From: Penicillus capitatus
Taxonomy: Eukaryota > Plantae > Chlorophyta
DNA length: 64,000 bases
Direction: 5' to 3'
Assembly (NCBI GenBank): GCA_965649825.1
Contig: OZ287704.1
Location: forward strand, 112,101-176,100
Shown here: positions 1-64,000 of the stretch, one piece after another
Layout of the letters: the number at the start of each line of letters is the position of its first letter
Numbering within the stretch: the stretch's first letter is position 1
Program-made: the position numbers and the translations under genes
The notes under the pieces: model-generated
Told to the model about the DNA's origin: nothing
The model's input: only the letters and a program-made list of their open reading frames with translations
Databases searched by the model: none

Positions 1-2602
1 GATCCTGCCTGTGAGCCCTCTATACGGGCGCCATCTGAGATTTCGTTTGCAGTCATATTCAGGCAGAAGGGCGTCAGATCGACGCTTCCGTCATCCGGGT
101 TAACACTGGTGTTGGTGCGCATACGAAATTTTTCTCCAGGACTGCACGAGACCTCGATTCCCGCGGGCTGTGTTGAGAAAATGCCTCCGGCGTACAGTGC
201 CCTGTTTTTCGTTATCGTGACGTTGTGCAGTCCGAAGATCTGACACGTGTCCAGTCCGTACACAGAAGGAAAGCACGAAAGTTTCTCTGTGTTGAGCCAG
301 TAATGTCCTGCCATATGAACTGAGAAGCCACCTGCGAAGACAGCAGTCCACAGAGGAAGCAAGCATCGCGTAGACGTACCGCCGACGGAAGCTTCGTTGC
401 CTGTCACCTCAAGATGCTGGAAGATGATCTCAGCGATGGTGTGATGGCGGACAGCAGTGAGGACGGCGGCGATGCCGCCTCCGTGTCCTTCGTCCACATC
501 CGTGATGAACGTGTAGGGAGTGAGATCGCCGTACTGCTCCGTCGTGTTTGGCATTCTAACTTCAGCCGAAGGCAATGGCTCGTACTGCTCTCCTCGTTCG
601 ACCAGGTCCCGCATCGCTGGCGTCTCCAAGCGCAACGCCTTGTTGTCGACGACCGTGCTGTTCATCATCTGCACACCGAGGCGCAGCCATAGAGACAGCA
701 CTCGGATTCGGAGAGCTCATACTCTGAAGACGATCAGGTATGCTCGTCCTGGCTCGTAATAGAGACCGCCGCCGATGCCAGCTGTGTTGCCGCGGATGAT
801 CGTCGGCTGTTCGTTGTCGTCGGTGGTGATGTTCGTGTTCACCGTTCGCAAGAGAGCAATGCCTCCTCCGGCCAAGGCTCTGTTGCCCTCGATGAGGACA
901 CCCCGGATCAACACCTTTCCGTTGATCTCGTTTCCACGAAGCCCTCCTCCGTGACGAAAGGCCGTGTTGTTCTGGATGACTAAGGCCGTCAGATTCATCT
1001 CATCTGAGCAACACCCGAATACATGCCGAGTGAGAAGCATCGACGAGGTTACCTGCGAAGTCCGCCAAAATCCCGCCTCCGTACATGGCCACATTGTTTT
1101 TCAGGATGCTGAGAGCAGTCAGGTCCGTTGGATCGTGCTCGGTGACAAGGATGGAGCTTTTCCACAGCATAATACCACCGCCGTAGACGGCGCGGCCTTT
1201 TTGGACGATAGTGTTTCTCATGGTCAATCGGACGCACTCGAGGGCGATGCTTCCTCCGGAAGAGAGTGCGACATCCTGTTCGAAGACACACGACTGGATG
1301 ACGTGTTTGGACAGGCGTGGACCCGATGCTCGTATCGCCACGGAGCCTCCGAAGCGTGCACGATTCCTCTGGAAGGACGTGTTGGTCACCGACCACTGAC
1401 TGATCCACTCGGGCCCGTGTTCTCCGTACAACGCACCCCCGAGATGGGTCTCCCCTCTCGGCTCTGGTGGAGAGATCAACGCGTCATTCTGAGATCCGCA
1501 GAAAGCTTGATTTTCTTCGAAGTGAGAATCTGTGACGTTCAAGTGAAAAGTCGAGGTGCCACTGTTGTCGGGTGCGGACGTCAGGATGGCGATGCCACCT
1601 CCACCACGACATCCGACATTGCGTGAGAAAGCCGAACCCATGACCGACACGATAACGACGTTGTGTGCGTAGATGGCCCCTCCTTTGCCGAGAAACTCCA
1701 CCTCATCATTCTTCGTCATCCCCAGGCCCTTCCTTTCGTCTCTGCTGGGCTTCCTGCCGTGCGCTCTGTTGTTCTTAAAAACTGAAGAGCGAATGGCTGC
1801 CGAGGATCTGAGTCGATGGTTATTCATGTAGACTGCCCCACCAGCCAGATCCGCTTCGTTGCGCACGAAGGTTGAGTTGCGGACAACGAGTCGGGTGTCT
1901 TCCAAAAAGAGCGCGCCGCCGATTGACCCTCGGTTCTGAACGAACTTACAGAAACGGATTCGGAGGACACGGCGAGTACATGAGGACCCCTCTGCACATT
2001 CTGCAATTCCCACAGCTGCTCCTCGGATTCCCTTTCCTCTGTCGCCATTTCGGTCGAAGACAACGTTGGCGAACGTCACGTATCTCCTCTCGGATCCATT
2101 ATCGTTCCGCCTGTCCACCAGCACAGCCGAATCCCGGCGGCAGTCCGTGATGGTGAGGGAGCTGATGCCCACACCGCCCTCTCTGAAGACAAACGACGGT
2201 CAGCGAATTCCGCCGGTGCGCGCAACGTCCTGCAACCTGACGACAAAGGCGTTACGCACGAGTTCGCCCGAACAGCGGACAGCTGTTCGATTCTCGCCGC
2301 GTCCTCTCAGCTTCAGCCCAGGTGCGTCGAGCAGGATGGATTCGGTCAGGCGTATCTCCGACGCATCGAGGAAGACTGTTTGGTTTGGACGGATGTTGGA
2401 GAGCTTCTCCCGCAGTTCGGTCTCTGACCTCGCGACGATGTCGCCGCCAGGTCTGTCGTCGGATCGCCTCGTCTGCCCTGTCGGCAAACACATTTATTCC
2501 TTCAGGGCGTCATGGATGTTAGTAACCATGAGCTGAAAAGGCGAGAACGAGAACGAGGATGAGCGTTAAACACAGAGGACATGCATTGCGACAGCCAAAC
2601 AT
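1..2602 (-). CDS. Pmp-repeat (beta-helix) cell-surface receptor-like protein, paralog 1; multi-exon, 3' end runs off the window
   Basis: ATG at 2602 gives the signal peptide MFGCRNACPLCLTLILVLVLAFSAHG. Introns of 49 and 54 nt join the 2200-2493 and 1000-2172 ORF pieces in frame. Repeated GGA(I/L)/FxxN motifs (FVQNRGSIGGALF, FVRNEADLAGGAVY, FQRNRARFGGSV). Later exons (GHGGGIAAV..., CFPSVYGLDTCQIF) align with paralogs 2-4. Confidence 0.85.
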
Positions 2603-3891
2603 TTTGCCTCCACGCAGGTATCGGTCTTTTTGCGAAGTTCAAAAGAACGCGAACCGCCTACACGACCTGATGTCATCATGCATAATAGACAGATTTCGCT
2701 AGAAGTTGCATGATAGACAGATTCCCCATACGGGTCCTGATAGAAGGCCACGGGTCATGTTATACCGAGCGCAAGGTGGTAAAGAACAGACCGGCGAGGA
2801 ACAGAGCTCCGAAGCAAAAGAAATCCGGCGGGTCGAGCTATAGGATGGGATGGACAAGATACCGGCATAGCCAAATGTCCTAAGGGTCGGTCAAGTGTTC
2901 GCAGTCTCTGCTCTACACAAGACAATGGCATTGCCGGTTCTACTCGAGAACAGTGCTTCCGAGTCGAAGAAAGACAGCGATGAAGCAATTTATGTGACGT
3001 TCTGCGCACGGGAGCTTTGGTGGACCACCCTGAGAGGGCCAAGCATTTGATGACGTCGATGAGGTAGGAGTGAATAGCGTCTTCCGCTGTTGTGCGCCTT
3101 TAGATCCTTTTATCTAATAGCGCGCGTCCTGCTAAGCTTCGAAAGTAGGATGTTTCGAGAACTCTGTACTCACCGGGGCATGAAGGCATTGTTTGAATTG
3201 GCGGGCTCTTGTGTAAACATTGACAGATCTTCTAACGATCTCTCGGAGGTACAGATCTTGTTCTTACTCCCTTGATGGATGTCCCCAAATCTGAGTGTCC
3301 GAGAGTGGCCGAGGCGAGAAGGAGTGAGGAAGGGTAAAGTCGATGCCTCCCGATCGTCTTGGGTCTCTTCCTTTGTCTACTGGACCGTACCCGTTGATGT
3401 GACATCGAATCTCCGGCTGACGTGACAGATTCGAATCGTAAACGTATCCAAGGAGCCGTTCGCTTCGCCACAGACCAGCAGATAAGCTCGTGCGATTGTC
3501 ATCATCTAACAATGCGAAGTGTGATCGCTGCATTTTACACAACGGATGTCTTTAGACACTCGCCTTATCGCAGAAGATTGCTCGTGTCGTCGTCGACTGA
3601 CAAGTGCTGCTCGCACTGCAAGAACAATCACGTACATCAGTTCAGCTTCGACGTCTCTTTACCCTGGCTGTGTGGATGGACAACCGTTTTCTTTGCTGTC
3701 CAAAGCATGGGCACGGGAAAACGTGGACGGGACGCGCCGACGATGTCCTGTCAACTGCACGACAGCTAGGACGGCATTCAAGTTCGACCACGCATACCTG
3801 AGGCTGCATTTGATTCGAACCTTGCATTTGAATCCGAGCAAGAAGCGTTTTTTATCTCGCCGTCACACAGATCTTGTTCTTCTGTGTAAAC

Positions 3892-5921: not shown

Positions 5922-7112
5922 GGTTTGCGACGATGGATTTCTCAAATGACACGTTTTCCGTTTCAACTTGTCATCCGCATGCCATGCACGTTCAACTGGA
6001 TGGAGCTGCTGTATAAAGTTCCATCTCAACTGTTCAACTCTGTCAAAGATGATTGAATGTCTTGATTGTGTCTGCCGACGCGACATTCTCCGATTCTTGC
6101 GCTAAACGTGCGCAAACACGCGGATATTCTGCACAGCGCGGTGGAGCATGGGCCTTTTGGTCGGGAAGTTGTCGCTGCGACGAGTGTATCTATCATCAGT
6201 ACAGAACTTCGGTAGGCGCACCGCTACAGAACGAACTTTTGATGGTCCAAGTTCTCTTTCTTGTCGTTCTGTGTCCCTGCTCGACGACCCTACTGGTAGA
6301 CTCGATGCAAACAGTAAGCACATCTGTCACGCGACGCAAACGGATACGGGTGTCGCCGATCTGGGTCCTCTGGAAAACCGCAAAAGCACACACAGAGTGT
6401 TGTTGAAGATTCAGTTCGTGCAGCGCAGACTTCGAAGCTACTCGAAAACCTGGTCGAACGAGACATTGAACATCAGGAGTCCGAATCTTGAACGATAGCC
6501 AATCGTCATCATCAACACATCATTTGTTTGGTCTTTCAATGTTCCATTGACGTTTCAGTCTTTTGACAGCCTCTTAGGGTTACCTAGTGGGCGGCCTCCG
6601 ATCCCGTGTCTGCGCATCTCTCGTAAGGCAATCAGCTTGTCGCGTCTGATGGAGGGACAAAGGGCGAGAGACTGGCATTTGCTGCCTCCTGTCGACAGCT
6701 TTCGTCGATTTGTCGTTTGATGCGACGGCTTCAGTACAGACGCACGCACCTAAATGCCGGAGACACATCGTCGCATTGTCATGCTCATCGGCCTCAGCCG
6801 CGAGGGTCTTTCCCCCCACTCTTAAATAACCTCCATCGCTAACTGTTTTTGTCTAGCTCGCTCCGCGGTTGCAGAGAAGCTCCGCTCCCTCGGCTGGGCC
6901 GTCGTGCAAGTACACCCTTCCCGGATAACAACTGAAGGAGCTTACGTGACGCGCAGGGACGCCCGAGCAATCCTCTAGTCGCGGAGGAATTCGTCAATTT
7001 AGTCCTGTCTGGACGTGAAGTCGTGCTGGACGAGTATCCGATGCATCCCATGACATTCATCGAACTCGCGTGCTGTTTCTAGACCGAATACTCAACGGAC
7101 AGAACGGCGACA

Positions 7113-16286: not shown

Positions 16287-19200
16287 ATGCGAAACAGCTC
16301 TCTCCGTCTTCGCTTTTTCCTCTTCTCCTTTACATGTGTCGTGTGCGTCGCGCTTAATGAAGGTGACGTGCTGCTATCGTCACGGAATCTGCCGTCGCCG
16401 GAGAGAAACCGCGCCAAGGCCCATGGCGAATGGCACCGTTCTCTGCACCAGTTTGCGCCGGATGGGCCCATGGTCGCAACTCGGACGTTCTGGGAGCTCC
16501 GACGAAGCTTCAACTCATTGCTAGAAAACGGTACCATCGTCATTGACGCTGAGGACCCGCTGAAATTGGAAGAAACGTTGATTGTCGACCTTCCGGGCAT
16601 TACTCTCCGCGGGAGATCCGGTCGGCCGACGACTCTCATCTGTCCCTCCGTCTCAAAACCTGCCCTTATCATAAGGTGTCCATCCAGTTATTCATCCCAA
16701 TGGTGTGACATTTGTGTGCAGAGGGGCCAGGACACGGGTGGAGTCCTTGAACTTTGTAAGATGTGAGAATACTTCGGTCATCGTTGTCGAACTGCCGGAG
16801 AGTGTGACGTCCAACTCTTCTGCGGTTTCATTCATGAATGTAGGCTTTTCTGAGAACCGGAATTTCGGAGGGAGAGGCGCCCTTCGGGCTGTCTCCCATA
16901 CTGGTGATCGATTCTGTTCTTCGCATCGGATCAACGTCGAGAACTGTACGTTCTCAAACAACCGAGCGAAGAAAGGAGCAGCGATATACGTCAAGAATGT
17001 CCATCTCAACATTAGGAACTCCAGATTTATCGAGAATCACGCATACCGTTCGGGAGGTGCCATATCATTTGAATCCAAATGCCGAGATCCGAATGCCTTG
17101 ACGATTAAGAACTCCTCGTTTATCGGCAACCTGGCCGTTTCTCGTCTTGCAGTGGCGGAAGGGGACGATCTTACCGAAGATCTGGCTGGACGAGGCGGCG
17201 CCATTGCGGCCATCAATCCTCGAAACACAAGCTTTCAGGATGTCAGATTTGTAAACAACACCAGCTGTGGCGGCGGCGGGGCATTGTATGTCCGCATGAT
17301 AGAGACAGAAGAACAACGAAATCCGACAGCTGACTTCCAAATCGAGAGATCTCTCTTCGAAGGGAACGGAGCTTATTGCATGGCAACTCCCAGAGCAGAG
17401 CTGAGGAACCCTCGTGATCATAATCATTACGCAGGAGGCGCCTTCCTCTATCGCTCGACCGTCTATCTCCAAATGCACTGGATCGTCCGTAACACAAGAT
17501 TCACTCGGAATCGCGCCGTATACGGAGGAGCTATGCAAGTGTCGGGCCAACCTGAGACGCCGCTCAATTTGGTCGATTCTTTATTAGAAGAAAATGGAGC
17601 GCTGCAGAGAGGCGGTGCCATTTGCATCCCTGGGGCTCAACTCAAAATGCGAGGATCAACACTGCGTAGAAACGCTGCACTGGTAGGAGGAGGCATCGCT
17701 GTCTTACTTGGTGGTCGTCTCATCACTTTACCTCACCCTTCGAATCACTCTTTAGTTTCCATCGTCGAAGAGAACTCTGCTTACTATGGCGGAGGCATCG
17801 GCATCTTTGTGACAGGTCTGTTAGATAACACTTCTTATCCCTCTGCATTTCTGTGTCCTGCATCAGATACGATGGATCTGAGATCTTTGACAGTGCGGAA
17901 TAATACGGCGTTCCATTACGGCGGCGGAATCCGCGTCTTTGCCATCTCGACGATGGTCTACTTTCGTGGGATTACTGTGGAGGGCAACAGAGCCATGGCT
18001 GGAGGGGGATTCGCATTCACTTCGTCCCCTATTGCGCATTTTGAATCGGCTGATGGGAAAGCGATGCATGTCGCCAACAACTTGGCGGCTGTCGGTGGTG
18101 GTCTGCTCTTCGAGATCGGGCATTATGTGCCAATCAATATCACAGTAAGCTGCTCTCAACGACGCCGATCGGTCCAAAACCGAAGCTGTAGATTAAGGAA
18201 GCCGTAATCTCGGGCAACACAGTACGCCATTCTCGGCATCCAGACATCGTGGACCTCCGCAGAGCCGGCGAAAGCTATCTCCCATTGCATTCATCTCCGA
18301 TACGTAATACCTACGATTTCATAGATGGCTTCGATACACGATCGGCTTTGACCACCTGGGTTGGATCTTTGGCTGGTCATGGCGGTGGCATCTGTATGTC
18401 ATTTGTCGACATCCTACCTTTTACTCTGGCCCAAGTCAACCTCCAGGACGTAGTGCTACGGGATAACGAGGCAGTGGTGGGCGGAGGTGCTTCGTTCCAC
18501 TACACGGATCTCCTTTGGAACAAAGGAGACATGAAGTACTGTACCTCCAGTGTATTTGGTATCGAATTTTGTCAACGCATGTACTTCAACAAGATCAGTT
18601 TTCGAGGCAACCGGGCAGACTACGCAGGCGGTCTCTTCATCTCGCATCCAGACAGTGTCATTGTCACCTGCAACATGACAGACGTGCAGCTGAATTCCAC
18701 CTTCGAAGCCGTCTACAACAGAAAGATCCATGCACAGGAAATGCTTGATCCGATGCTGGATCTTCAATGCCTCGTCATTGAGGACAACCACATCTCTGTA
18801 TGTCACTCACCTTGTCAAGACGTGTGTTTCGATGAGGATGGTGCGATGCAGGATGGAGAGACTGTTGATGGAGCGGATGTTGGCACTCTGGCAAGGGCAT
18901 TGGCAATCGATGGCCTAGAGGAAGGAACGGATCTGAGACGCGTGGCCAGTGGGGAGAAACTCTCTCTTCCGTGCGACGAGAAGGGAGAGAAAGCGTCATC
19001 CTGCCTCGAAGGATTCACAGTCTCCGTGTTGGATGCTTTCAACCAGACCATTTCCAGAGGCATCGATGACGCGTCTCTGGAGCTATCTCTGGAATCGCCA
19101 AACATCGGAGGTGCCATTCATTATGTGACAAAGCACGGTGTGGCTCGGATCGACGCGACGATGGCTCGAGGAATCGGCGTCGAGTCTTATGTGACCATCC

Positions 19201-21321
19201 TGAACGACCGAGAGCCTTCCATTCGGACGCAAGCGGTTTTCTCCACAAGACAGTGTTATCCTGGAGAGTTCGTAACGGGCGACAGCTGCCACTCGTGTCC
19301 GGCGGATGTCTACAGCTTCAATGCCTCGCTGGGACAGTGCCATCCCTGCGAGGCCCATGCCAGATGCAGGGGACAAGCATCGCTGGTGCCCGAAGTTGGC
19401 TACTGGCACTCGACGCCCTTCTCTCCCAAGTTCCACCGATGCATTGAAAAAGAGGCGTGTCGCTTTGATGACAGGGAAAAGAACCTGGATGCATTCTACC
19501 AGAACGAGGAACAGCTTCAGAAGGATCTGGACAAGATGAATGCCTATCTCGAAGGAAACGATTCTCTGCCAGAATTCCCAAACTACCAACAGTGTGCCGA
19601 AGGGTACGAAGGCGTGCTCTGTGGCTCGTGTCAGCAAGATCACGGACATGGATTCTCAGGAACCTGCGTCTCCTGTCCATCCGAGAGGGGCAATGCAGGG
19701 ATGCTGTTGGCGGCGGCCATCTTCTGGACTTTTGTCGTCATCGGCGTCAACTGTCTGGTCACTCTGATGTCGGCCAGGACAAGGATTCAGCTGGTCCGCC
19801 ACGAAACACACAACCAGGACAACAATCGCACCGGGACGCTGCAGAGAACGACGGTTCACATTCGCGAGAGCGTATCTGTCAGGATACTTCCATCCCGATC
19901 TTGCACACTGAGCCCTGCCACTTCGGAGTTCAGCGATGTCTTCTGTCGCCAGGTCCTGACGCAGTATCTCGTCACCACTGTCCAGCTGACAGAAACACTC
20001 AAGATCCTCATCAACTACCTGCAGGTCACGAGCTCGGCCATGCGACTCTCCGTCGATTGGAGTCGCGTCCTCGACGGTCTCCTCTCTGTCGAAGGTGCGA
20101 CTCTTGAGATTCCCCCTTCCTGATCTAATGCCTCTATGCGCAGCGGCTTTTGTGGGTGTGACCAGCGAGGCGCTGTCCATTCCTTTCGAATGCAACTTTC
20201 AGGGATCGACGACGCACTGGCCACCTTCGATCCTTGCCATATGGATGCGACTTCTCACCCCTTGCTTGGCGCTGACAGGGCTCATTCTCATCTACGTCCT
20301 CTTCTGGATCATTCGTCACTTGACACGCACCACCGAGTTAGAGTCAACGAGCAATCTCCGAGCCAGCGACCTCATCACAGGCGTCATTATCATCATCATC
20401 GTTGCGGTGCACTTCTCATACATCGACAACGTCCGCGAGATGCTGCGAATCGTTAACTGCATCCAAGTGGATGCAGATGATGCATCTCTGACATCGCATC
20501 CGTACGGACAGTACGCCATCGAAGAAGGTCGTACAGTCTGGGCAGAGGACACCGATCTCATCTGTTTTCAAGGAAAGCATCAAGTGACTGGAATCGCCGG
20601 TATCATCGGATTGGTGCTGGCACTGATGCTCATCATCTTCGCTGTTTTCTGGTTGCCAGCAAACAAGAAGAAATCCACCTCGACGCAGTTTGTCGCGCGT
20701 TACTGGTTCATTTATCAGGCATACAAAAACAAATGGTACACGATTCCATGGGAGGCAGTGATTCTGCTTCGCAAGGCACTCATCTCGGCCGTCATTGTCT
20801 TCTCCTTTCAGCTCGGGCCGAGTCTGCAGGCAGCACTGTGTGTAGGGATTCTGATCGCGGCGCACATTCTCCAAGTCGTATGCCAGCCATTCAAGGTCCC
20901 AGAGAATCATGTCCACGTGCCAGAGTACGCAGGTCACTTCCTCAAGGCAATGCACATGCCGAACGTCGCAGCGCGCTTTGTCCGCTGGAACAACTCCCTG
21001 TCTCTGAACGCCCTGGAATTCGCATCTCTCTTATGTTCATTTTTTATCTTCTACACGGCTGTCATCTTGACGGACAACGATGTTTCCGAAATCGTTGTCC
21101 AGTTAATCTCCATCGCCGCCGTGGGCGCCAACATTCTTTTCTTGCTCTACGTGTTATATCGTCTGTACTGGGGGCTTCACATACTCTTGGATCTGAGGTT
21201 GGAAATGGATAATCCAACCTTTGTTGCAACACATGAAAACGATCCTGGGTGTTTCTATCTAATGCGTAAATTGTATCGTGTCTGCCGTGCCGTCGTCCAG
21301 AGACATCTCCATGAGAGATAA
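16287..21321 (+). CDS. Pmp-repeat cell-surface receptor-like protein, paralog 2 (about 1,500-1,600 aa, complete)
   Basis: Signal peptide MRNSSLRLRFFLFSFTCVVCVA. ORFs 16287-16766, 16705-18207, 18249-20123 and 20095-21321 join through GT-AG introns (e.g. 16676-16721). GGA/FxxN repeats; Cys-rich CYPGEF...CHSC...C.PC...YWHS...C...G..C..C stalk; about 8-9 TM helices with YWFIYQAY..W...WEAVILLRK. Confidence 0.9.
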
Positions 21322-24816: not shown

Positions 24817-24866
24817 ATGTGTTACAAATCGAACGATGCCGAATCTGTCCCATCCGATTCTCTCTC

Positions 24867-26212: not shown

Positions 26213-29200
26213 ATGTCGCCGTTGCGTTCCCTCTTACTGCTAACGGTCTTGACTCAGGCAGCGCGTCCAAGCACCGGTAAAAAAACGTTCTCTTGCGCCG
26301 ACAGCATATCTGTGTGTCGTCGTTTAAGGTCGCGGCCTGCGCCTAGAGAACCAAAGGCCTGTGATCGTTACAGGCGCAACGGACATCCACGAGGTCCTTT
26401 CCCGAGTAGAAGACGGACAGACCGTCGTCTTTGAGACCGAAGAGATCGTGCTGAACCGTACCCTGGTTATTGCGCAATCAAATATCACGCTTCGAGGTTC
26501 AGACAGTGGCAACACGACGCTTCGTTGTCATCCGACAGCACGTCTCGGTGCACTGCTCATCCGGTGAGCGTTGTCCCCTATCGCCTCGAAATGCTGACAC
26601 CGCTGCGGATGACGCCGTCGCAGGCAGGGCGAAACGCACATCGAGAATCTGAGCTTTGCCGATTGCCATGGAGCACCGGCCGTGTCGATAGAACCCACAC
26701 AAGGGGGACGGAAAGCATGGAACGTGCGTTTTGAGAGAGTGCGTTTCGAGGGGAATGGAAAACAGGGCGAAGGCGTTTATGGAGCGGCAGTGTCACTCAA
26801 TGTCCACGATACGGCGTCGCATAACGAGACCTGCTTCGTGCATTTCACATCCTGTCACTTCTCGAAGAATCGTGCCGCTCTCGGTGGGGCCATTTACGTC
26901 ACCGATGCTCACGTCTACATCACCAACTCGACATTCGATGAGAACAGAGCCGACGTTTCTGGAGGGGCTGTTTACATTCAGGGCACGCGAGAGGTTTCGC
27001 TAACGATCGATGGATCTTCATTTTCGAACAACAGCGCCCAAGGCAAAACGGATCAGTTGAAAGCGGTGGATGGGAAGCTGCCGTGGATCAAAGACGAGAC
27101 ATCGGCGGCTATCGGAACGGGCGGCGCTGTTCTTGTCAACTGCTCTACCAATGTCTCCATCACTGCATCGGTTTTTCGCAACAATGTCGGGCATAGGGGT
27201 GGCGGCGGACTGGCCGTTGTGCACATGCAATCCCAGCCCTACGATCAAGAACAAACCTACACCATCATTAACCGTTCTCATTTTGAGGCGAATTATGCCT
27301 ACTGCCATGAAGAAGGAGAAGTCAACAATACAGACGTGCAAGGACTGTCAACATACTTTGGTGGTGCGATCTACTACGATCACTCCAGTAACCATCGGCC
27401 AGGCAGATGGGAAATCAATGCGACAGAATTCCTGCGGAATGAGGCAGCTGGTGGCGGCGCCATCTGTCTGAGATCGCACATACGATCCAGATCTCCGAAC
27501 ATGATTCTTTACTATTCACTCTTTAAGGAAAACTTTGCTAAGTACATCGGCGGAGCCATCTTCACCGACTCGTTGAACATCAACGTGTTCAGCACCGCCT
27601 TCAGAAAAAACGAGGCACAGTATGGCGGCAGTCTTTTCTTGTACCAATCTCCTGCCACGCAATTCTGCCACAACACAGAGGATCCGAAAAATGTCAGTGT
27701 GATTGAAGAGTCGGTGGCCTACTACGGTGGTGGGATGCTCGTCAATGCCCACGAGAGTATGTCCCTCTCTTCTTCCCTCACTCATTTCTCGACGATCTGT
27801 TGCTGTCTGCAGGTGGCATCAGCCTCACTGCGCTGAACGTCACCAGAAACAGTGCCTATTTCAGTGGAGGAGGCATCCTCGTTGAGAGCCTTGGTCAGCC
27901 AGTCATCATTCGGGGCATCGTCGTTGAAAAGAATAGGGCGCTGCTTGGGGGTGGCATTGCCCTTATTGCTGTGGCCAACTTCACCATTGATTCGAGCAAC
28001 CAAACCCGCACCATCATTCAAGAGAACGATGCTGCTGTGGGTGGTGGATTGCACTTTCAACCGGTGGAATCCAGTCCTATCTTGGATGTCACAGTAAAGA
28101 TGATGTGACTTGGCGAATGCCTCTTCGAGAGTGGTGTAGATTGCCGGTGCAGATTTTCGAGGGAATCGTGCCCGACGAACAGACGACATTGGATCGGAGC
28201 TTCAAAACATACAGAACATCAGAACTGTACATAAGAAAAAATTGAGCGACGCCGACCTGCATCGATTGATCAAAATTTCTGCTGGCAGTGGTGGTGGGAT
28301 CTGTACGTGCGTACACCACATTCGAGAATTAGCCGCTGCCGAGATCAAATTCCACGACCTTCGCATCGAAGAGAACACCGCATTGGTTGGCGGTCGGTCA
28401 CTCTTTTCACGCATTCTCCGGTGATGTGACGGATGTGACAGGTGGTCTGTTCTTTCTTATGAGGGATCATGATTGGAATAAAGACGGCGGCTACAACAAG
28501 CCCTCTTGCTTTCCAGCCAATTTCGGCATGGAGCATTGTCGACGATTCCTGTTCTTCAATGTCTCCGTCATGAGGAACAGTGCCAGTCACGCCGCCGGAT
28601 GGTTCTCCTCGTCGCCGGACGCCCTTGTCACAATCTGCAATATCTCTGAGGAAGATCGAGCGAACATTATGGAGTCTCAAGGGAAGACCATTGAAATCAA
28701 GCACCGCCATCAATGTGAGAACATCACCGACAATCACTTCCTCGATGGGTCCGGCGGCCTGAGTGCCGACTTCGGAACCCGTGCCATACGCTTGGCGATG
28801 GAAGGCTGGGACGGTCGACTGAAAGAGGTGAAGAGTCAGGAGACATTGGTCGTGCCTTGTGCAAATAACAGCGACAGCTCTTGCACATCGCGTCCACTAC
28901 GCATCGCCGTGAAAGATATCTTTAATCGGACGATCGCGCAGGGCATCGATGATGCGAATCTGACACTGCTGCTCGAATCGGATGCCATTTCAGGAGAACG
29001 GAGGTATACAGCTGTCAATGGCATTGCCGAAATTAGATTCACTAAGGCCAAAGGCTTCGGCGTCAGCAGCAATCTGATAGTTCTCAGCGAACGTGACCCA
29101 GAGCTGCACGTCGACATCCCATTCTCGATCAGGGAGTGCTATCCAGGAGAGATTCAGGGAGACACGTGCACGAGCTGTCACATGAATCAGTACAGCTTCC

Positions 29201-31406
29201 GTCCTGAAGAAGGATCCTGCCAACCTTGTGAAAGAGATGCGATCTGCAAGGGAGGGGCGAATCGAGTCCCAAAGCAGGGCTACTGGCATTCCACACCCTT
29301 TTCGCCAGTCTTCCGTGCATGTATCCAGAAAGAGGCCTGTAGCTACGATGGTCGAGAAGACAGCCTGGGGAATTTGCTGAACGGCACCGATGATGATCCG
29401 AAGGCCGTCCATCTTCAGGAGATCCTTCGCGAGTTCGATGAGAGTCGTGACTCTGGACAGCCTCCTCCGGACTTCTCCGTGATCTATCCCCAATGCCGCA
29501 CGGGATATCGCGGATTGCTCTGTGGATCCTGTGCCCCTCGATACGGCCGTTCCGTGTCGCGATCGTGTCGATCGTGCCCTGAACATCATGCAACGTGCAC
29601 CATATACATCTGTCTTGTCATGGGATGGCTGTTTCTCTTGATTGGATTCAACTGTGGCATCACACTGGCTTCCATGAACTCCAGAGTCGATCTCGTCCAG
29701 TACGAGCAGGAAAAAAATCTTGCCAGTCGACAGGAATTGCCTCTAAGTCACCAAAACGCAAGAAAACAGTTAGAACAGCCAACAACTGGCATTCTCTCAA
29801 CTGGTACGGCGGCAGTGCTGCCCCTCCTCTGTTATACGAAGAGAAACGCGTGTTTGGTTTTGTTCAGGGCGTCTAAGTGCGTTAGATTTTCGTGGAGATC
29901 CTCGTCGGCAGAGGATCTTCGCCCAACAGCTCATTGCTACGGTTCAGTTGACTGAAACACTAAAGGCATTCAGCATCCACTTTGCACCAACAAGGCTCAG
30001 GTTTTCTGTGTAGATTCTGATGAACTACTTGCAGGTCACGGGAACGGCCTTGCGTCTACAGACGGACTGGAATCCACTTCTTAAGGGACTGTTGACATTC
30101 GAGAGTAAGCTATCCTCCCGTGGCAGTCACAGATCGATGGTGTCGCGTTTCTGCAGATGGTGTCGCTGGATTGCCGATCGATTTTCTGTCGGTACCGTAC
30201 GAGTGCATTTTCAGGAATGCCACTTTTCCGTCCGTTCCTGCCTCCTGGATACGTCTAGCCATTCCGTGGTCGATCCTCGTCGCCCTGGAAGTGGCTTTTC
30301 TCCTCGTGGCTCTCTTCTTGACGCTTCTGGATGCCTATCGACATCGCACACTTCGTCTGCCGTTCTGCAGCAAGGAACGGATTATTACTTACATGATCGT
30401 GATATCCATCGTCTCGATGTACTTTTCATACATCGATGTCGTTAGGGAGCTCCTCAGGGCGCTCAACTGTATCAAAATCAAAAAGTCAACAGAGAACGCG
30501 GCAAGAAACCACACTTACCTTGACTATGCAACAGAGACCGTGGATGTACACGTCTGGGCGGAGGACACTGGAATCGTCTGCCTCAGGGGCAGCCATTTGC
30601 CCATCGGAATTGTGAGCCTGCTTGGACTCATCCTCTCACTCGGCGGCATCGTTTCCATCGCCCTCTGGCTGCCACTGAATGAACAGACAAGGACGCGGCC
30701 GGAATTTGTGGCACGCTACTGGTTTCTCTACCAGGCTTACCGACCGAAGTGGTATACAGCGGCCTGGGAGTCGACCATTATCTGCCGAAAGTCATTGCTG
30801 GTTGGCGTCATTGTCTTCTCCTCCCATATGGGGCCTTCTCTCCAAGCAGCCATGTGTGCAGCAATCTTGACAGCTGCTCTATTTCTGAATGCCGTGCTGT
30901 CGCCTTTCAAGATTCCAGCAAATCACCAGAACGTACCAACCTATGCCGGAAAACTCTTCGAGATTGTTCACCCGCGATTGGCTGCTGGCTGGATAAAGTT
31001 CAATAACTCGATGCATCTGAATACTGTGGAGTCTGTCTCGCTGATCTCTTCGATCGTCATGTTCTACTGCGCCATCGTTCTGCAAGATAGCACTTCCTCT
31101 CCAACTGGACGCATGATGATGATTTCCTTCGCTTTCATTGTCAACGTGACGGTGCCATTCTACCTGGTCTACCGACTCTACGCTGGACTCCATTTTCTCC
31201 TAGATCTCAAACTGGAACTGATCGGTTCTGGCATTCCGGGAGCGCAGAATAAAATGACGATTCCGAAGTTCATCCGGAAAATGCTGTGGTTGATTAAAGC
31301 ACGAAGAGCCAGACGCGAATATTCGCGAACCATCCATGAATCTTCATCACATACCGATATGTCTGCTGTGGTTCATATGAGCGGCCGCATTCCGAGTGAT
31401 CCATAA
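26213..31406 (+). CDS. Pmp-repeat cell-surface receptor-like protein, paralog 3 (complete)
   Basis: Signal peptide MSPLRSLLLLTVLTQAARPSTG. Spliced frame is continuous through ORFs 26361, 26682, 27800, 28387 and 30120, including a GC-AG intron at 29966-30013. Same beta-helix / Cys-rich / multi-TM layout as paralog 2. TAA at 31404-31406. Confidence 0.9.
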
Positions 31407-32137: not shown

Positions 32138-35100
32138 ATGACACACCGATTGGCAGTGCTTATCGCGGCCTTCTTGGTACTGTCAGACATTGTCGATGGA
32201 CGCGAAGAAGACAGGAAGCCATCGCTTACTGTGAGAAATCTACGGACAGACCTCGATACTCCTCTTCGCCGGAACGCGCGCCGATTACAGCAAGACGACG
32301 AAGCGCCGTCCGTTGTTTTCGTGAGCAGCGCAGAGACGCTCCGCGAGGCATTGGCACGTTCGCAAGGAAACCAGATGTTCGTGCTGAATACTTCGGAAAT
32401 TGTTCTCGACGCGAAGCTGGTCATCGAGAAATCGAACATCTCTTTGGAGGGCTCGAGAGAACACCCAACCACGACCATTCGCTGCTCACGCCACGCAACA
32501 GAGAGCGCGATTCACGTCCGGTATTATCTCAGCTCTGTGTGACGGTGTGAAGAGACCGCGCACGTAGGGCGGGTCGGACGCGGTTTGCCCGTCTGTACTT
32601 TGATGGATGTCGTCGACCATCCGTTATTGCGATTAAGACTCCGAAAGAAGGCCCTCTGTCGAAAGTGGATGTCAGGTTTGAAGACGTCGAGTTTGTTGGC
32701 AACGGAAACGGCGACGGTCGCTTCCGTGGCGGCGCTGTTCGTGCGGCAGCATGCTCTAACGCAACGTGCCCTCGACTCGCTCTCCGTTTCGTCTCTTGCC
32801 GTTTCGCACAAAACAGCGCGGCTTTCGGCGGAGGCGTTTTCGTCTCAGCGAAGAATGCCACCATCCGTATTCGCAATTGCACATTTGAAGGAAACACTGC
32901 CGACGTGGCAGGGGGTGCCCTCTTCGTCCGAGACGCAGCGTTGACCATCCGAGCATCGCGTTTCGAAGGAAACAGAGCCTTTGGCAATACAGAATCCGAC
33001 GAACGGAGGGACCAGAACACCGACGACGCTCAGGACCCGGCGCAGATTGAAGCCGGAGTAGCAGGAGGTGCCATTCGGGCCGTCAATCCTCTCCGCATTC
33101 GAATACTGAGCTCGAACTTCACCGGCAATGTCGGCTGCGAAGGCGGCGGTGCTCTGAGCGTCTCCAGCGCGAAGCTGCCACAAGACATCGGCGACTCTAA
33201 CGTCTTTAATATCGTGGCATCGCGTTTTGTCAACAATAGTGCATTTTGTGGGCCTCAGCCAAAAGCGCTGGAGAATCATGACGATGGGCAGCAGGAACAT
33301 GTGGGAGGGGCGTTGATGTACGAGGCCCTGGAACTGACGACAGCCGTTTGGACAATTCGCAACACAACTTTCCAAAGAAACATCGCATTCAAAGGAGGGG
33401 CTGTCGGTTTCTATTCTGCCGTCACGTCGACGGCAGACCACAACATTACGGGAAGCCATTTCAGTGAGAATGTCGCTATGGTGATCGGCGGCTCGCTGTT
33501 TCTCTGTCGACTGCGCCTCACCATCCAGAGCTCGTTGTTCCGAAACAGCAGATCGACCTACGGCGGCGGCATTGCTGTGTTTCGCACAGGGAGACTGAAA
33601 TTCGATGATGATCCGAGAAGTGCCGCGCCAGTCAGTGTCGTCGAGGGCAATACTGGCAGCTACGGTGGCGGCATCATCGTGCTTTATCAAAGTGAACATC
33701 CGCGATCCCTCGATCTCGGATCTCACATCCTGTTGTTTTTTACAGGTCAAGTCAATGCTACCGCTCTGATCCTTCGCAGTAATACAGCCCTTCGAAGTGG
33801 CGGCGGCATGCGGATCCAGGAATGTAGTGGACCGATAATTCTCCGCGGCGTTGAAGTGCTGAACAACTGGGCGGTGGTCGGTGGCGGTGTCTCTATGCTC
33901 GGCGTGTCGATTCTGAAGGTAACCTCATCTGAAGTCGCAGATACCGTTTTCGGAAACAATATTGCTGCCGTGGGCGGCGGATTTCTCTTTGAACCGGGGG
34001 AGGAAATTCGTTTTGAACTGCTGGTGAGCACTCAGAGTTTCATGCCGCCGTGTACAGAGAGGACTGCTTTAGATTGAATTCTCTACGTTTGTTGGTAACC
34101 GAGTCTTGGGTCTGGACGATGCCAAGATGTCAGAATTTGTGGAAAAGAGCTTCAACTATACGCTGCTGGAAGAGGCCAACCTCACTGAGACGACGTTGAA
34201 AGAGGATCTTGGCACAGATCTCAACATCGTTCAATTCTTGACCACTGCTCCAGAGGGTCACGGTGGCGGTCTTGCTTTCTCTTTTCTGAATCTCCGACCG
34301 CACGCCATCACCCAAGTCATCGTGCAAAACATCACTGTCACGGAAAACGAGGCCGTTGTCGGAGGTGTGGTCTCAGTCCGGCGATCGTTCAGTGTGCGAT
34401 GTCTGCCGTTCTGTAGGTGGTATAGCGATCGCCATGGCAAAACGCTTCTGGAATAGAGAGATCGGAAAAGAGATGTGCTTTCCAGCCATCTTCGGCTTTG
34501 AAATCTGCCAGATCTTTCGTCTTCATGTGGCGACGGTGACGAAGAATCGCGCCAGCTTCGCAGCGGGCGTGTTCTCTTTATACGCCAGCGGAGTCTCCAT
34601 TTCTTGCGGTCCTGGACACGAAGCAGTGCTTCCAAGTAAAGACCACGAAATGATGCGACAGCCCGACGCCCTCGCTGCATACTGCCTGAATGTAACGGGC
34701 AATGTGGTTTCGGACGGAGAAGACATCGCAGATGCCGCCACCGGAGTGGTGAGCCTAGCCATTGAAGGATGGAATGCAACCGAGCCGTTGATCAATCTAG
34801 AAAGCGGTCAAAACATCGACCTCCCTTGCGAGTCGGCCAAAACCAATACCTCTTGCAAACGCCACCCCTTGCGCGTTGCTGTGAAAGACATCTTCGGTCA
34901 CACAATCGTCCGGGGAATCGACGATGCGAACCTGACACTGATACTCGAGTCAGAGAACATCGTGGGCGAGCTCAGATACACTGCCAAGAATGGCATTGCA
35001 GAGATTAACAGTACCCGCGCAAAGCATCCCAATGTCACCAGCAAGCCGCTGACCATAAGGAGCGAACGTTATCCAGATATCAACATCACCATTTATTTCT

Positions 35101-37385
35101 CGACCCGAGAATGCTATCCCGGAGAAATCGAGACGGATCTCAGCTGTCAGTCCTGTGTTGCCGATCAGTACAGCTTCCATCCCGAAAAGAAATCGTGCCG
35201 ACCCTGCGAAACAGACGCCATCTGCAAAGGAGGGGCTGCACTGGTGCCGAAGGATGGATTCTGGCATTCCACACCTTTCTCTCCTGTCTTCCGTAAATGC
35301 GTAAGTAACAAGGCATGCAAGTATGCCAAACGACAGGATATCCTCGGAGAGTTTTATGACGACGATCAGAAAATGAAGGAATTGCGAGAAGAGCTCGATG
35401 GTCTGTCCATACGAGAGAACACAGACGGCACGATGCCGCGGAACTTCTCCGAGATGTATCATCAATGTCACGAAGGCTATCGAGGGTATCTTTGTGGATC
35501 GTGTGCTCCTGGCTACGGTCGTGCATACAACGGCGATTGCCAGGAGTGTCCTAACGTAGTCTCGCACTACGGTCTGTCTATTTTGCTGACCATTGGCTGG
35601 AGATTTATGCTGATCGGACTCAACTGCGCCGTCACTTTAATGTCGATGAATTCCAGAATCGATCTGGTGAGACATGAACAGGAAGAGAGCGGCAGGGGCA
35701 ACACTCCAAGGATCCTGCGAAACCAGCATAGTCGAAAGGCCATCGTTGTGGAATCGCCTCGATCTAGCAGAATTCGAGGTCACATCAAACGGATCTCTCT
35801 CATACGATGGCAAGATGTCGCTTTCCAGGTCGACCTAGCGCAGAGGATTTTGATAATGACCCCGGTGGCCGACTTGCTTTTTCGCAACAACTGGTTGCCA
35901 CGGCTCAACTGACAGAAACGCTGAAGGTGGGATGAACAGCGGAGGCAGAAAACAATGCTGTGTTGCTTAGATTCTGATTAACTACCTACAAGTGACTGGC
36001 ACAGCGCTGCGACTACAGGCAAATTGGAGTACCCTTCTCAGAATCTTCTTGAGGATTCAAAGTGCTCGGGACGCTTTTTTGTTTTGCTTTCGCATTCCAG
36101 CCCTGTCTGCTGTCTAGATGGCTTTGCAGGATTGTCCGATGAGCTGTTCGCCGTTCCGCACGAGTGCAATTTCGAGAACAGCCACATTCACGATTCCATC
36201 GGTGCCATATGGGTTCGCCTGGTGTCACCATGGATCGCCCTCATCGCCATGGAAGTGGTCTTCCTTGTGGTGACGTTCATTCGCCGATCGATCCGTCGTT
36301 GCCGTAACGCGACAAATCTCCACCGTCGTGTCAACGGGGAGCGCTTCTTTACCTTCATTATTGTGATTGCCGTGGTGTCGATATACTTCTCATACATCGA
36401 CGTCGTCAGGGAGCTGCTCAGAGCTCTCAACTGTATCAGGATTCAGGATTCGAATGAGAATGAGGAAACACCCAATCCTTACCTTAACTATGCAACCGAG
36501 ACAGTGGACGTGCACGTCTGGGTGGAAGATACCGATTTGGAGTGCCTCAGAGGAAGCCATCTCCCAGTTGGCATCGTCGGCATCGTGGGCCTCATCTTCT
36601 CTGTATGCGGTATTGTCTCCATTGCTCTGTGGCTCCCGCTGAACAAGCGAAGCAAAACCGATCCTGAATTCGTGGCACGGTATTGGTTTCTCTATCAAGC
36701 TTACAAGCCACAATGGTACACCGTGGCATGGGAATCCACTGTGCTCGCCAGAAAATCGTTGCTCGCCGCTGTGGTTGTGTTTTCCAATCATCTCGGTCCA
36801 TCACTCCAGGCATCGGCGTGCGCTGGGGTACTGACGGTGTTCCTGTCACTACAGGCTTTCTTTTCGCCTTTCAAGATTCCTGAAAACCATCGCAACGTTC
36901 CTCAATACGCTGGCGGTCTTCTGAGAGCTATCAGATTTCCGAGAGGCGCCGATCAATGGATCCGTCTCAACAACGGATTCCATCTCAACATGTTAGAATC
37001 TGCATCGCTGACGGCGTCGATCGTTATGTTCTACTCCGCCATCGTCTTGCAGAGTTCAGCCTCGACGATCTTGGGCTGTTGCTCCATCGAAGTTCTGGCG
37101 TTTTCTGTGAACCTTGCCTTTCTATTGTACATGTTCTACAGACTCTATGCCGGCATGCATCTCTTGCTAGACCTCAAACTCTCGTTAGTCATCGAGGAGC
37201 GCGTCTTGTTTGAAAACAGTTTGGGTCTCATTAGTTTTGTTAGGAAAGCCTTTGCTCTTCTTCAGATTCGAAGAAAGGCACATCAAACGAACGATTCGGT
37301 CCATGTCTCTGCCCGTTCTTCGGCCTATGAGCGTGGATCGCCTTCGACAGATCATTCGACATTTGATTCTGTGGAAAATGCATAA
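32138..37385 (+). CDS. Pmp-repeat cell-surface receptor-like protein, paralog 4 (complete)
   Basis: Signal peptide MTHRLAVLIAAFLVLSDIVDG. Spliced frame is continuous through ORFs 32138, 32665, 34106, 34356 and 36024. Same architecture. TAA at 37383-37385. Confidence 0.9.
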
Positions 37386-45760: not shown

Positions 45761-45764
45761 GTCG

Positions 45765-57250: not shown

Positions 57251-57270
57251 CACTCAGTAAAACAGTAAAT

Positions 57271-60429: not shown

Positions 60430-61089
60430 CTAGAAGACAAAGTTTGCAGCCGGCGGCGGATAGACATCTGCAACTCCGTCCGTCGCAACGATGCCGGTGA
60501 CTTCGATGTCCAAAACGGCGCCTTTGGTCAATGCTTGCATGTGATACGTTGGCGTGATCTCGCTGCCACTTTTGGGAATCGTTCCAACCAGACCACCATC
60601 TTCGTAGATCGCAATGTCATTCGTATTGGCAACAATCGTCACGGCATGCGGACCAGTGCCCTTGAGAATTTTGCTGGGACCGACTGTGTTGAATCTGCCT
60701 GTCCAGTAGACCCAGTTCGCCGACTTGCCGTTGTTTGTGGTGCGAAGAATGGCCTGAGACATGACGGTGAACTTGGTCTCCGATGTTTTGTCTGTCTCTT
60801 TCACGTTGATATGGAACGACGTCGCCGCTCCGACTCGCGACGTGGGAGCCAACGACACTCTCGTCCATACATTGCTGCCTTCCAAACCGGGAGTCGTATA
60901 GGTGATGCACGACTCGCACGAACAAGGTCCGACGACTGCGGCGAGATTTGAGCCCTGTGAGATCTGAAACGGCCTGTGGCATTGACTGTCGTTAAAAGAC
61001 GAGATGGTGCGGGCGGGGACTTACAGACGACAATCTTTGGCCTGCGCAGCCACGGCAAGGAAAGCAAGCACAATGAGGAATGTCTTCAT
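60430..61089 (-). CDS. Small secreted beta-strand-rich protein (about 200 aa), possibly lectin/ConA-LamG-like
   Basis: Signal peptide MKTFLIVLAFLAVAAQA. A 51-nt GTAAGT...CAG intron (61024-60974) joins in frame to the 60430-60885 ORF. Segment HAVTIVANTNDIAIYEDGGLVG resembles LamG-like strands. Confidence 0.7.
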
Positions 61090-62499: not shown

Positions 62500-64000
62500 A
62501 TGGACTCCCTGCTTCGCACCGTGCAATTGGCTTTGAAGCGGCCTTCAGAGATGTCGATTGGTCAAGCAGCTATGCTATGTCTCATTCTCACACTTTCAGT
62601 CATTCACGTCGCCACAGGTCATCGAATAAAATCGACCATTCCAGATCTATATTCGCTGTGCAGTTGTATGGACAACTGACTGACTGTAGGCGAACAACGT
62701 AGACTGCATCAGCAGCAGGGGAGAAGGCAGTGTGTGATGTCCGAGCGGCAGCTGCAAGAAGCCCTAAGCCAGGCAGAACGAGGAAGCACCATCTGTCTTG
62801 ATGCGATTGCCGTGACTTTGACACATCCCCTCGTCGTCAACGTACCCAATGTGACAATTGAGGGCAGCGCCGAGTCGAGGACCACCATCCGTTGCCCTGA
62901 AAACGGCAGCAGCGGTGCCTTTGTCATCAGGCACGTCTTGAGATCACAGATCTGGTAAGGAATGATGGTGCAGGGAAGAGGGGACGCTCATAAGGTCACT
63001 TAACATCACGTTCTGCAGAAAGCACTCGGCTGTGACGATCGAAGCGGATACATCGGGGCCCAGTAGAAAGATGGAGGTCACATTCGAAGACGTGCATTTC
63101 CTCCGAAACGGCAGACGCAATGAACACATCTTTGGTGCAGCTGTTCGATCAAGCGCCTGTCTGAACAGTCCTTGTCCAAAACGTCTCCTGCGATTCATCT
63201 CCTGTCACTTCTCGGAGAACACATCCTTACAAGGAGGCGCCATCTTTGCGGAGAATGCAGATGTCGAGATCGCGAATTGTGTCTTCGTGCACAACCGAGC
63301 GATGCTGAATGGAGGTGCCCTCTGTGTCCGTCACTCTCAGAGTGCCACTCTCAACATCGTCGATTCGGATTTCGATGGAAATGAAGCACAGTGGGACGAT
63401 ACGCCGTCTTATCTCCAAAACCTCGATCTGCTGGACACCCTGAATCAAACTTTGAGCAGTGTTGGGGCGGGAGGCGCCATCTTTGCAGAGAACCCCGCTG
63501 CCGCTTCGATTGGCCGATCTGTCTTTGCGAACAATACCGGGTGCCAAGGGGGAGGGGCTATTGCCGTTGTCCATGGTGGCATCTTACCTGAACAGAATAG
63601 CACCTATTCCTTGCGCATTCACGATTCCCTCTTCGACGACAATGCTGCCTTCTGTGGCAAACCGACCGATGGTCTGGAAATCGTTTTGGGAAGAATGGAA
63701 GTACGGGGAGGGGGTTCTCTGTTTTACAATTCTCTTGACGAGACGTTGATTGCATGGGACATCCGAAACACATCATTCGAGCGAAACTGGGCCAATCTGG
63801 GCGGCGCTCTGTTTTTTCAGTCCTTCCAACCATCAGCTGCGCAGCATACCATAACCAACTGCTCCTTTTCAGAGAACATTGGATTACGAGCAGGCGGCTC
63901 GTTGATGGCATTGGGCAGTCGGGTTCTCATCAAGAGCAATCGGATTACACAGAGTCGGTCGACTTTTGGCGGCGGGATCTGTTTATGGAACAAGGCTTGT
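62500..64000 (+). CDS. Pmp-repeat cell-surface receptor-like protein, paralog 5; runs off the window
   Basis: Hydrophobic leader (AMLCLILTLSVIHVAT). A GC-AG intron at 62931-62973 sits at the family-conserved AF/LxIR position. The frame is then open to 64000 with FSENTSLQGGAIF, FVHNRAMLNGGAL, FANNTGCQGGGAIA, FERNWANLGGALF. Confidence 0.85.

Follow-up and report, generated by a model that had tools for sequence, protein, structure and literature searches.

Fungal proteins of the Pfam family PF06011 ('TRP') include Pkd2, Trp663 and Trp1322 of S. pombe, Flc1-3 of S. cerevisiae and TrpR of A. nidulans (PMC8618638), and for Pkd2 an Ig-like extracellular domain together with nine transmembrane (TM) helices was predicted (bioRxiv 10.1101/2022.08.11.503631). 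Reconstituted Pkd2 allows Ca2+ passage upon membrane stretch and the protein supports Ca2+ spikes in vivo (PMC9727806), and roles in Ca2+ homeostasis and wall integrity were reported for TrpR and the Flc proteins (PMC8618638, PMC9600462). Pmp proteins, through their beta-helices, mediate adhesion in Chlamydia and in Trichomonas (PMC2997323, PMC6701047), and the Pmps of Trichomonas vaginalis (TvPmp) are reported to raise adherence (PMC6701047). Here we analysed a 64,000 nucleotide (nt)-long stretch of the genome of the green alga Penicillus capitatus (contig OZ287704.1, positions 112,101 to 176,100), hereafter called the window, which contains a cluster of large paralogous genes whose products have a Pmp-type ectodomain followed by a multi-pass membrane domain. 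On sequence grounds, both this architecture and the assignment of the membrane domain as a distant relative of PF06011 are nearly certain. As the most likely role we propose, by analogy, a surface-sensing and calcium-linked channel or channel regulator, an overall explanation to which we would give an even chance.

With the fungal proteins (including also C. neoformans Flc1) the window proteins share the homologous multi-pass domain, a signal peptide, an extracellular disulfide-bearing beta-rich domain, nine predicted TM helices, a cytosolic tail and the lack of a match to the canonical six-TM TRP fold. The two groups differ in the ectodomain, which in fungi is a TRP_N ML/Ig-like lipid-binding domain of ~150 amino acids (aa) and in the alga a beta-helix, a sandwich and a stalk of ~1,100 aa in all. 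They differ also in the membrane part, where the window proteins are sub-threshold in Pfam when taken alone, have a long cytosolic loop after the first TM helix (TM1) and carry an insert between TM7 and TM8. Chlamydial Pmps resemble the window proteins in the GGA(I/L/V)/FxxN coils that build a right-handed beta-helix, in the adhesin-like exposed domain and in being a paralogous family, but they are type V autotransporters with a C-terminal beta-barrel (PF03797), whereas the algal proteins have nine alpha-helices and no barrel and their genes have spliceosomal introns and encode a eukaryotic signal peptide. TvPmp proteins, which are from a parasite and not from an alga, are likewise eukaryotic membrane proteins with Pmp repeats and belong to an expanded gene family, but reportedly they cross the membrane once, have short cytoplasmic tails and lack a PF06011-like domain. 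As a functional analogy only, animal polycystin-1 and polycystin-2 also combine a very large repeat-built ectodomain with a multi-pass Ca2+-linked membrane module, and polycystin-2 bears a C-terminal EF-hand, as some algal homologs appear to do; no sequence or fold match to polycystins was found, however, and the window proteins have neither PKD, REJ, GPS or PLAT domains nor the six-TM pore fold.

Gene models were spliced by hand, the window (~52% G+C) being eukaryotic DNA with very short spliceosomal introns, and the spliced protein of gene A was then used as a tblastn query against the window. This query matched exactly five loci (36-2451 on the minus strand, 16287-21318, 26400-31220, 32593-37160 and 62984-63985) with E-values from 2e-29 to 8.5e-176, and no match beyond these loci was found in the window with proteins A, B and C. 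The five paralogs that the initial annotation had placed here from the letters alone were therefore borne out, with the correction that paralog 1, for which no strand had been given, is on the minus strand. Splicing, which that annotation had proposed as a check, gave for each of A, B and C a single frame of ~1,600 aa (Table 1). These three genes contain 3, 8 and 6 introns, respectively, of 44-70 nt. Across the five paralogs introns are uniformly tiny (43-72 nt, mostly 44-60 nt), and two out of about 20 have GC-AG ends, precisely those at 29966-30013 in B and at 62931-62973 in E.

The phase-2 intron that had been noticed after the first AxxIR strand is present in all five paralogs, following A-x-x-(I/V)-R. 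Four further intron positions are common to subsets of them: a phase-0 intron between 'xIT' and 'I' (A, B, C and apparently gene 1, whose partial model retains one stop there), a phase-1 intron between 'VG' and 'GG' (B and C), an intron after 'TETLK' (in B, with GC-AG ends, and in C) and a phase-1 intron preceding the last exon (A, B and C). The two positions kept in B and C have been lost from A.

All the five paralogs have signal-peptide-like N-termini. In the three complete proteins, Pfam recognised the Pmp repeat family PF02415 (Chlam_PMP) with E-values of 5.5e-18 (A), 1.3e-16 (B) and 4.2e-6 (C), the corresponding scores of 63.5, 59.3 and 26.9 bits being all above the curated cut-off of 20.6, and in C the model Beta_helix (PF13229) was matched too (E 8e-7, 29.2 bits). 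The Pmp repeats read at first sight in the sequence are thus real, and the signal peptide, too, is as first described. Each ectodomain of A, B and C contains 12-14 GG[AGS]x coils with a spacing of roughly 25-50 aa, and 7-12 FxxN motifs are present within the first 700 aa. The beta-sandwich of the middle region bears a conserved 'VxVxDAFxQ' motif, its strands corresponding to residues 190-283 of the AlphaFold2 (AF2) model m9091591f78f0, and Foldseek gave for this region weak matches to Ig-like adhesin repeats.

Cysteine density is highest at aa 900-1100, and 13 cysteines at aa 959-1099 are common to A, B and C, so the Cys-rich stalk that had been described for the complete genes was found again; its motifs are CxPGE, GYWHS and CxxGYxGxLCGxC. 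Similarity of the stalk to known domains is below the cut-off for Pfam DUF7630 (23.4-23.9 bits in B and C, with a cut-off of 27) and not significant for Pfam Ephrin_rec_like (E 2-7), and Foldseek gave weak matches to the Cys-rich domains of EphA2 and EphA4 (prob 0.5-0.82, E>=0.04). Among the N-x-S/T sites, which are 19-27 per protein, 17-23 fall in the ectodomain. No Pfam match was found in the window proteins to either the autotransporter beta-barrel PF03797 or the fungal ML-like TRP_N lipid-binding domain. The beta-helix (~550 aa), the sandwich and the disulfide-rich stalk are placed outside the cell, and the predicted topology, with a glycosylatable ectodomain of ~1,100 aa on the extracellular side, would fit the initial view of surface proteins.

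As for the membrane part, for which about 8-9 TM helices had been estimated, we counted nine both by hydropathy and in two AF2 models. The first model comprises the C-terminal 941 aa of gene A (mean predicted local distance difference test score, pLDDT, 79.5) and the second its TM domain alone (430 aa, pLDDT 82.8, predicted template-modelling score, pTM, 0.84). The order from the N-terminal side is: last beta-helix coils, beta-sandwich, Cys-rich module, long TM1, a basic and disordered cytosolic loop of ~70-90 aa (pLDDT <50) and eight long helices, the first of which (TM2) is the 'KILINYLQVT' helix. Loop charges, read off the sequence, obey the positive-inside rule, and the models support a nine-pass glycoprotein with a type-I start, the N-terminus out and the C-terminus in. 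Conserved polar residues are present within TM helices (N16/Q19 in TM2 and N331/E334/S337 in TM8), and conserved Cys, Trp and Asp residues in the outer loops of the domain. The 33-aa insert between TM7 and TM8 was found, among the aligned full-length homologs, just in the window clade (A, B and C) and in the homolog P0001.

The relation to PF06011, whose gathering cut-off is 28.5 bits, was obtained through homologs. The homolog P0003, which aligns with gene A over its full length (E 1e-92, coverage 94%), scores 45.4 bits against PF06011 at aa 1077-1479, and P0019 of Chlamydomonas schloesseri scores 44.4 bits; the TM domain of gene A matches by BLASTP the PF06011-positive region of P0003 with an E-value of 1e-41. 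In addition, we considered 73 TM-only fragments retrieved with the TM profile of the window clade, all with E < 1e-68: PF06011 was matched by 20 of them (best E-value 7e-13), and every other family by at most four. The homolog search with the TM profile reached close open reading frame (ORF) fragments only and did not reach fungi. Pfam scans of raw ORF pieces and of the C-terminal halves returned no family for the TM part, with just chance-level hits to GPCR_Sru, PIRT and DUF models.

Structure searches returned no relative of the membrane domain. With Foldseek, neither AF2 model had a match in PDB at E<=1e-3, and a sequence-profile search of PDB with the TM alignment gave only a chance match to a poxvirus membrane protein (E 0.06). 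The TM domain is therefore neither a G-protein-coupled receptor (GPCR) nor a canonical six-TM TRP channel, and no protein related to it has been solved experimentally; to our knowledge, no experimental structure exists for the fungal 'TRP-like' PF06011 proteins either. Precisely, template-modelling scores (TM-scores) of 0.1-0.2 were obtained by Foldseek for GPCR, Cav, Nav and TRPM8 structures. We rejected the GPCR reading on the basis of the chance level of the only Pfam match, 7TM_GPCR_Sru (E 0.09, 12 bits), of the structural comparison (TM-score <=0.21, prob <=0.08) and of the number of helices, which are nine and not seven; we rejected the six-TM TRP reading with TM-scores of 0.12-0.14 for TRPM8 and Cav; and a transporter reading of the bundle was rejected too, given the absence of PDB matches at the above threshold. 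What the initial annotation had called a receptor-like multi-TM part is thus not a generic receptor or GPCR module, and belongs with the PF06011 superfamily.

Nor is the five-member cluster of the initial annotation a closed unit, since at least two further full-length paralogs lie in tandem upstream of the window (Table 1), so that at least seven members are present within about 140 kb of the contig. The upstream pair adjoins MutS and OST3/OST6 genes, and the same arrangement is found on the contig of a relative (L003). We also searched the TM-domain profile (alignment A2) against 1.84 billion representative proteins, and obtained, as clusters at 50% identity, 20,113 matches at E<=1e-3, 9,313 at E<=1e-10 and 1,706 at E<=1e-30. 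The top matches longer than 1,000 aa are almost all rich in GGA/FxxN motifs as well, which indicates that the full architecture is widespread. The Pmp genes have their best named homologs in Caulerpa, Bryopsis sp. KO-2023 and Ostreobium quekettii, all Bryopsidales. The proteins of Caulerpa lentillifera, Bryopsis, Ostreobium and Chlamydomonas schloesseri, which are among the top TM-profile matches, have the same full-length architecture, with 24-28% identity over 82-94% of gene A, but those of Bryopsis and Caulerpa belong to other subclades with expansions of their own, and the chlorophycean ones are distinguished by long low-complexity loops and by an EF-hand-like tail. This tail is represented in P0019 (aa 1791-1818) and P0039 by a DxDxDG loop straight after the TM domain, which in P0019 scores below the Pfam cut-off for an EF-hand (18.4 vs 25 bits, E 0.0017).

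The algal origin of the host is supported by the RCC1/ankyrin gene between A and B, which we used as a taxonomic marker: its best named match is g4070.t1 of Caulerpa lentillifera (45% identity with a coverage of 99%), and the next ones are from Trebouxia, from other chlorophytes and from land plants. Together with the homologs of the Pmp genes, this places the cluster in the nuclear DNA of a green alga nearest to the siphonous Bryopsidales. The 972-aa protein of the marker gene has an exact match on an ENA metagenome contig (ERZ25074695, ctg340406_44x_l, 593,085 bp), of which the window would cover roughly 119-183 kb. Searches of the literature on Pmp or PF02415 in algae, and on TRP and wounding in Caulerpa or Ostreobium, gave no relevant paper, and the family is not mentioned in the Bryopsis genome preprint. 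The combination of Pmp repeats and a PF06011-like domain already exists, unnamed and unstudied, in the annotated proteomes of Caulerpa, Bryopsis, Ostreobium and Chlamydomonas; our contribution is to place the TM module in the Pkd2/Flc superfamily, to describe its nine-TM topology and to provide evidence of age, synteny and constraint.

To describe the divergence of the genes we compared the paralogs with each other and with a relative, represented by a metagenome contig (ERZ26696514, 1.61 Mb) with ~81% DNA identity and colinear with positions 15581-31363 of the window. The large genes of the cluster had been described as intact, locally in tandem and strongly diverged, and in fact the models are intact and paralog identity is 36-44% overall, with the lowest values (31-34%) in the beta-helix and the highest (45-60%) in the TM domain. 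The relative keeps the order gene A, RCC1/ankyrin, inositol monophosphatase and gene B. In the orthologous locus (L002) the GT and AG ends of all the three introns of gene A are conserved, and for gene B the GT/GC..AG ends are kept in 7 of 8 introns, including the GC donor, the acceptor of the first one aligning to CG. Conservation is lower in introns and in intergenic DNA than in the exons.

The ratio of nonsynonymous to synonymous substitution rates (dN/dS) was calculated with the Nei-Gojobori method between each window gene and its syntenic ortholog. We obtained 0.26 for gene A (0.32 in the beta-helix and 0.20 in the TM domain) and 0.38 for gene B (0.50 and 0.21, respectively), with 0.16 for the RCC1/ankyrin neighbour used as a control and a dS of about 0.4-0.55. 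The genes are constrained, with purifying selection throughout, and evolve faster than their housekeeping neighbour, without gene- or domain-wide positive selection; divergence is faster in the ectodomain than in the TM domain. From the conserved synteny, the splice sites and the dN/dS of 0.26-0.38 we conclude that the genes are old and constrained; the cluster is an ordinary, ancient and constrained one. In a rough neighbour-joining tree, A and B/C fall within one subclade, on deep branches separate from each other, together with two genes of Caulerpa and many fragments from metagenomes; larger expansions are present in Bryopsis and in Caulerpa, each with its own. A recent expansion with fast turnover was rejected on synteny, dN/dS and this tree.

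In the mechanism that we propose, TM1 and the eight-helix bundle would work as a Ca2+-permeable channel or as a channel regulator, by analogy with Pkd2 and Flc/TrpR, the beta-helix, being rigid, would be anchored in the cell wall or in some external surface, or would probe it, and strain, wall damage or contact with a ligand would be converted to a calcium signal. Since the paralogs differ most in the ectodomain, those in tandem may be sensors of differing extracellular specificity built on one conserved signalling module. The conserved polar residues of TM2 and TM8 and the EF-hand-like tails of the chlorophycean homologs fit a calcium-linked membrane module. For the channel and surface-sensing part taken by itself, which depends on analogy, we estimate even chances at best, perhaps slightly less.

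Several observations weigh against this proposal. Even at E<=10 no PF06011 match was obtained with the C-terminal halves of the three complete proteins, so that membership of the family is transitive, through homologs and the profile; the TM fold resembles no solved channel in the Foldseek and PDB profile searches; and the window proteins are without the EF-hand-like loop of the chlorophycean homologs. Channel activity in the PF06011 family rests on few fungal studies, and several fungal members are located in the endoplasmic reticulum (ER) or Golgi, not in the plasma membrane. Flc proteins were first described as flavin carriers, with a link to flavin transport (PMC9600462), and this origin, together with the ER and Golgi members, makes both 'channel' and 'surface' uncertain.

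A different explanation would be a tether between wall and membrane, or a protein of the secretory pathway, without any signalling, in which the beta-helix is a structural adhesin or a polysaccharide-modifying or -binding module and the PF06011-like domain an ER/Golgi transporter, as for the 'flavin carrier' Flc. The right-handed beta-helix is a fold typically found in polysaccharide lyases, in epimerases and in binding proteins, Beta_helix matches are present here, and several homologs are named 'pectate lyase' in the databases; moreover, TrpR of Aspergillus resides in the Golgi and has a role in wall integrity (PMC8618638), and yeast Flc is linked to flavin transport (PMC9600462). We consider this explanation rather unlikely, as Pfam matched no catalytic family in A, B and C but just repeat and generic beta-helix models, as the many N-glycosylation sites and the disulfide stalk are typical of exposed surface proteins, and as the EF-hand-like tails of the chlorophycean homologs point to calcium. 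Much less credible, to the point that we would practically dismiss it, is the idea that the genes are non-functional, either decaying copies or an artefact of ORF reading. It could be suspected because the source is a metagenome assembly with prokaryote-style ORF calls and because one in-frame stop appears in the alignment of the gene B ortholog, but this stop is in an indel-rich stretch where the ORF called in the relative is continuous, and we treat it as what may be an alignment artefact. Moreover, three models of ~1,600 aa read through with canonical short introns only, splice sites including the rare GC donor are conserved at a dS of about 0.5, and dN/dS is 0.26-0.38.

The initial annotation had favoured a repertoire of surface receptors, expanded by tandem duplication, for the recognition of microbes, substrate or non-self; in this reading the repertoire would be variable and the TM part just a generic signalling anchor. 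The large, repeat-built and adhesin-like ectodomain is in line with this idea, as are the tandem arrays in the window and 57-78 kb upstream, the close gene numbers, apparently in runs, of many hits in Bryopsis (BSKO_067xx-068xx, on a single contig of 6.7 Mb) and of those in Caulerpa (g35xx-g39xx), and a dN/dS of 0.32-0.50 in the ectodomain vs 0.20 in the TM domain. However, every segment has a dN/dS <1, and in the comparison of A and B with their syntenic orthologs these values show no diversifying evolution of the kind that a non-self repertoire would lead one to expect. The paralogs are old, one-to-one and syntenic in the relative, and the window shows neither recent near-identical copies nor pseudogene debris, nor any other mark of birth-and-death turnover. 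In addition, conservation is strongest in the TM domain, which is a member of a channel-associated family and not what a passive anchor would be. On this basis we judge a recognition repertoire improbable; sensing of microbes or of non-self, purely inferred, is possible, and we do not favour it over the calcium-linked sensor.

The other features of the window are collected in Table 1 together with the gene models. The two inositol-monophosphatase paralogs that flank the B and C genes suggest an old segmental duplication which took in a Pmp gene. The G+C-rich patch at 57987-59052 contains a proline-rich ORF (repeated PPASEPSEPPALQPTVF) and 24/48-nt tandem repeats at 58486-58641, and could be either a low-complexity Pro-rich exon of a wall protein or non-coding repeat DNA. 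No tRNA genes were found in the window.

Table 1. Positions of the paralogs, of the parts of gene A and of the other features (window coordinates unless otherwise indicated).
Feature	Position	Strand	Remarks
Paralog 1, partial	1..2602	-	ATG at 2602, continues past window start; tblastn 29% identity to A, E 3e-77
Paralog 1, modelled exons	2602-2527, 2477-2237, 2182-1053, 1003-...	-	N-terminal ~800 aa: signal peptide and Pmp beta-helix
Paralog A, complete	16287..21321	+	1630 aa, 4 exons, single terminal stop
Paralog A, exons	16287-16675, 16722-18144, 18192-20094, 20144-21321	+	
Paralog B, complete	26213..31406	+	1582 aa, 9 exons, single terminal stop
Paralog B, exons	26213-26276, 26347-26563, 26624-27756, 27813-28093, 28140-28392, 28442-29803, 29868-29965, 30014-30104, 30157-31406	+	
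Paralog C, complete	32138..37385	+	1649 aa, 7 exons, single terminal stop; 44% identical to B
Paralog C, exons	32138-32520, 32568-34023, 34073-34364, 34417-35778, 35829-35926, 35971-36061, 36118-37385	+	
Paralog E, partial	62551..64000	+	First 445 aa, open at window end; tblastn 30% identity to A, E 2e-29
Paralog E, exons	62551-62617, 62690-62930, 62974-64000	+	
Two further full-length tandem paralogs	L004 6260-11176 and 12114-16741		Same contig (record 41153-62448), 57-78 kb upstream of window
Conserved phase-2 intron, gene A	16676-16721	+	46 nt, after 'PALIIR'
Conserved phase-2 intron, gene B	26564-26623	+	
Conserved phase-2 intron, gene C	32521-32567	+	
Conserved phase-2 intron, gene 1	2236-2183	-	
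Conserved phase-2 intron, gene E	62931-62973	+	GC-AG
Further introns, gene A	18145-18191, 20095-20143	+	First one 47 nt
Gene A, Pmp-type right-handed beta-helix	16722..18449	+	aa ~130-690, 12 GGx coils; PF02415; spans intron 18145-18191
Gene A, middle region	18447..19244	+	aa 690-955; final beta-helix coils, low-confidence acidic linker, beta-sandwich (AF2)
Gene A, cysteine-rich stalk	19242..19694	+	aa 955-1105; 13 Cys conserved in A, B, C
Gene A, TM helix 1	19698..19769	+	Hydropathy 2.38; long helix at model residues 415-459
Gene A, PF06011-like membrane domain	19962..21198	+	aa 1195-1590, TM helices 2-9; spans intron 20095-20143
Gene A, 33-aa insert (PENHVHVPEYAGHFLKAMH...) between TM7 and TM8	about 20886-20984	+	aa 1487-1519; predicted cytosolic, helical
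RCC1-repeat and ankyrin (IBtk-like) gene	21898-24816	-	Single exon, 972 aa; between A and B; 87% identical to relative's ortholog
Two paralogous inositol-monophosphatase-family genes	24950-25860 and 38907-39800	+	PF00459; upstream of B and downstream of C
404-aa ORF with LNS2/PITM-type HAD phosphatase domain	40059-41273	-	PF24694, E 6e-24
Ankyrin-repeat gene exons, and a weak NIF/FCP1-like phosphatase signal	4193-6000 and 7500-8300	+	NIF/FCP1 21.1 bits, cut-off 21.8
Tandem repeat arrays	45512-45978, 46209-46707		Units of 62-93 nt in up to 8 copies (78-97% matches); region of lower GC with no clear genes
58% G+C patch	57987-59052		Strong G-over-C and A-over-T skew; overlapping long ORFs on both strands
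151-aa ATG-less (TTG) ORF	60430-60885	-	Beta-rich, lectin-like look; no Pfam match

The family considered here is very large and prominent in siphonous green algae, and its studied kin are only the single-pass Pmps of Trichomonas and the fungal PF06011 proteins. A membrane part similar to Pkd2/Flc, rather than a generic receptor, gives the family a function that can be tested, for which we propose calcium-linked sensing at the cell surface or wall, and connects it to the poorly understood fungal 'TRP-like' proteins. A more far-reaching view, which at present we regard as a long shot, is that proteins combining Pmp repeats and PF06011 could be widespread and unrecognised eukaryotic receptor-channels, in which a beta-helix that binds the wall or a ligand would directly gate a calcium pathway of the Pkd2/Flc type and would serve, in coenocytic algae, the fast sensing of wounds, turgor or contact. 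If this were true, the tandem expansion in giant coenocytic green algae would supply the sensors that they need to survive injury.

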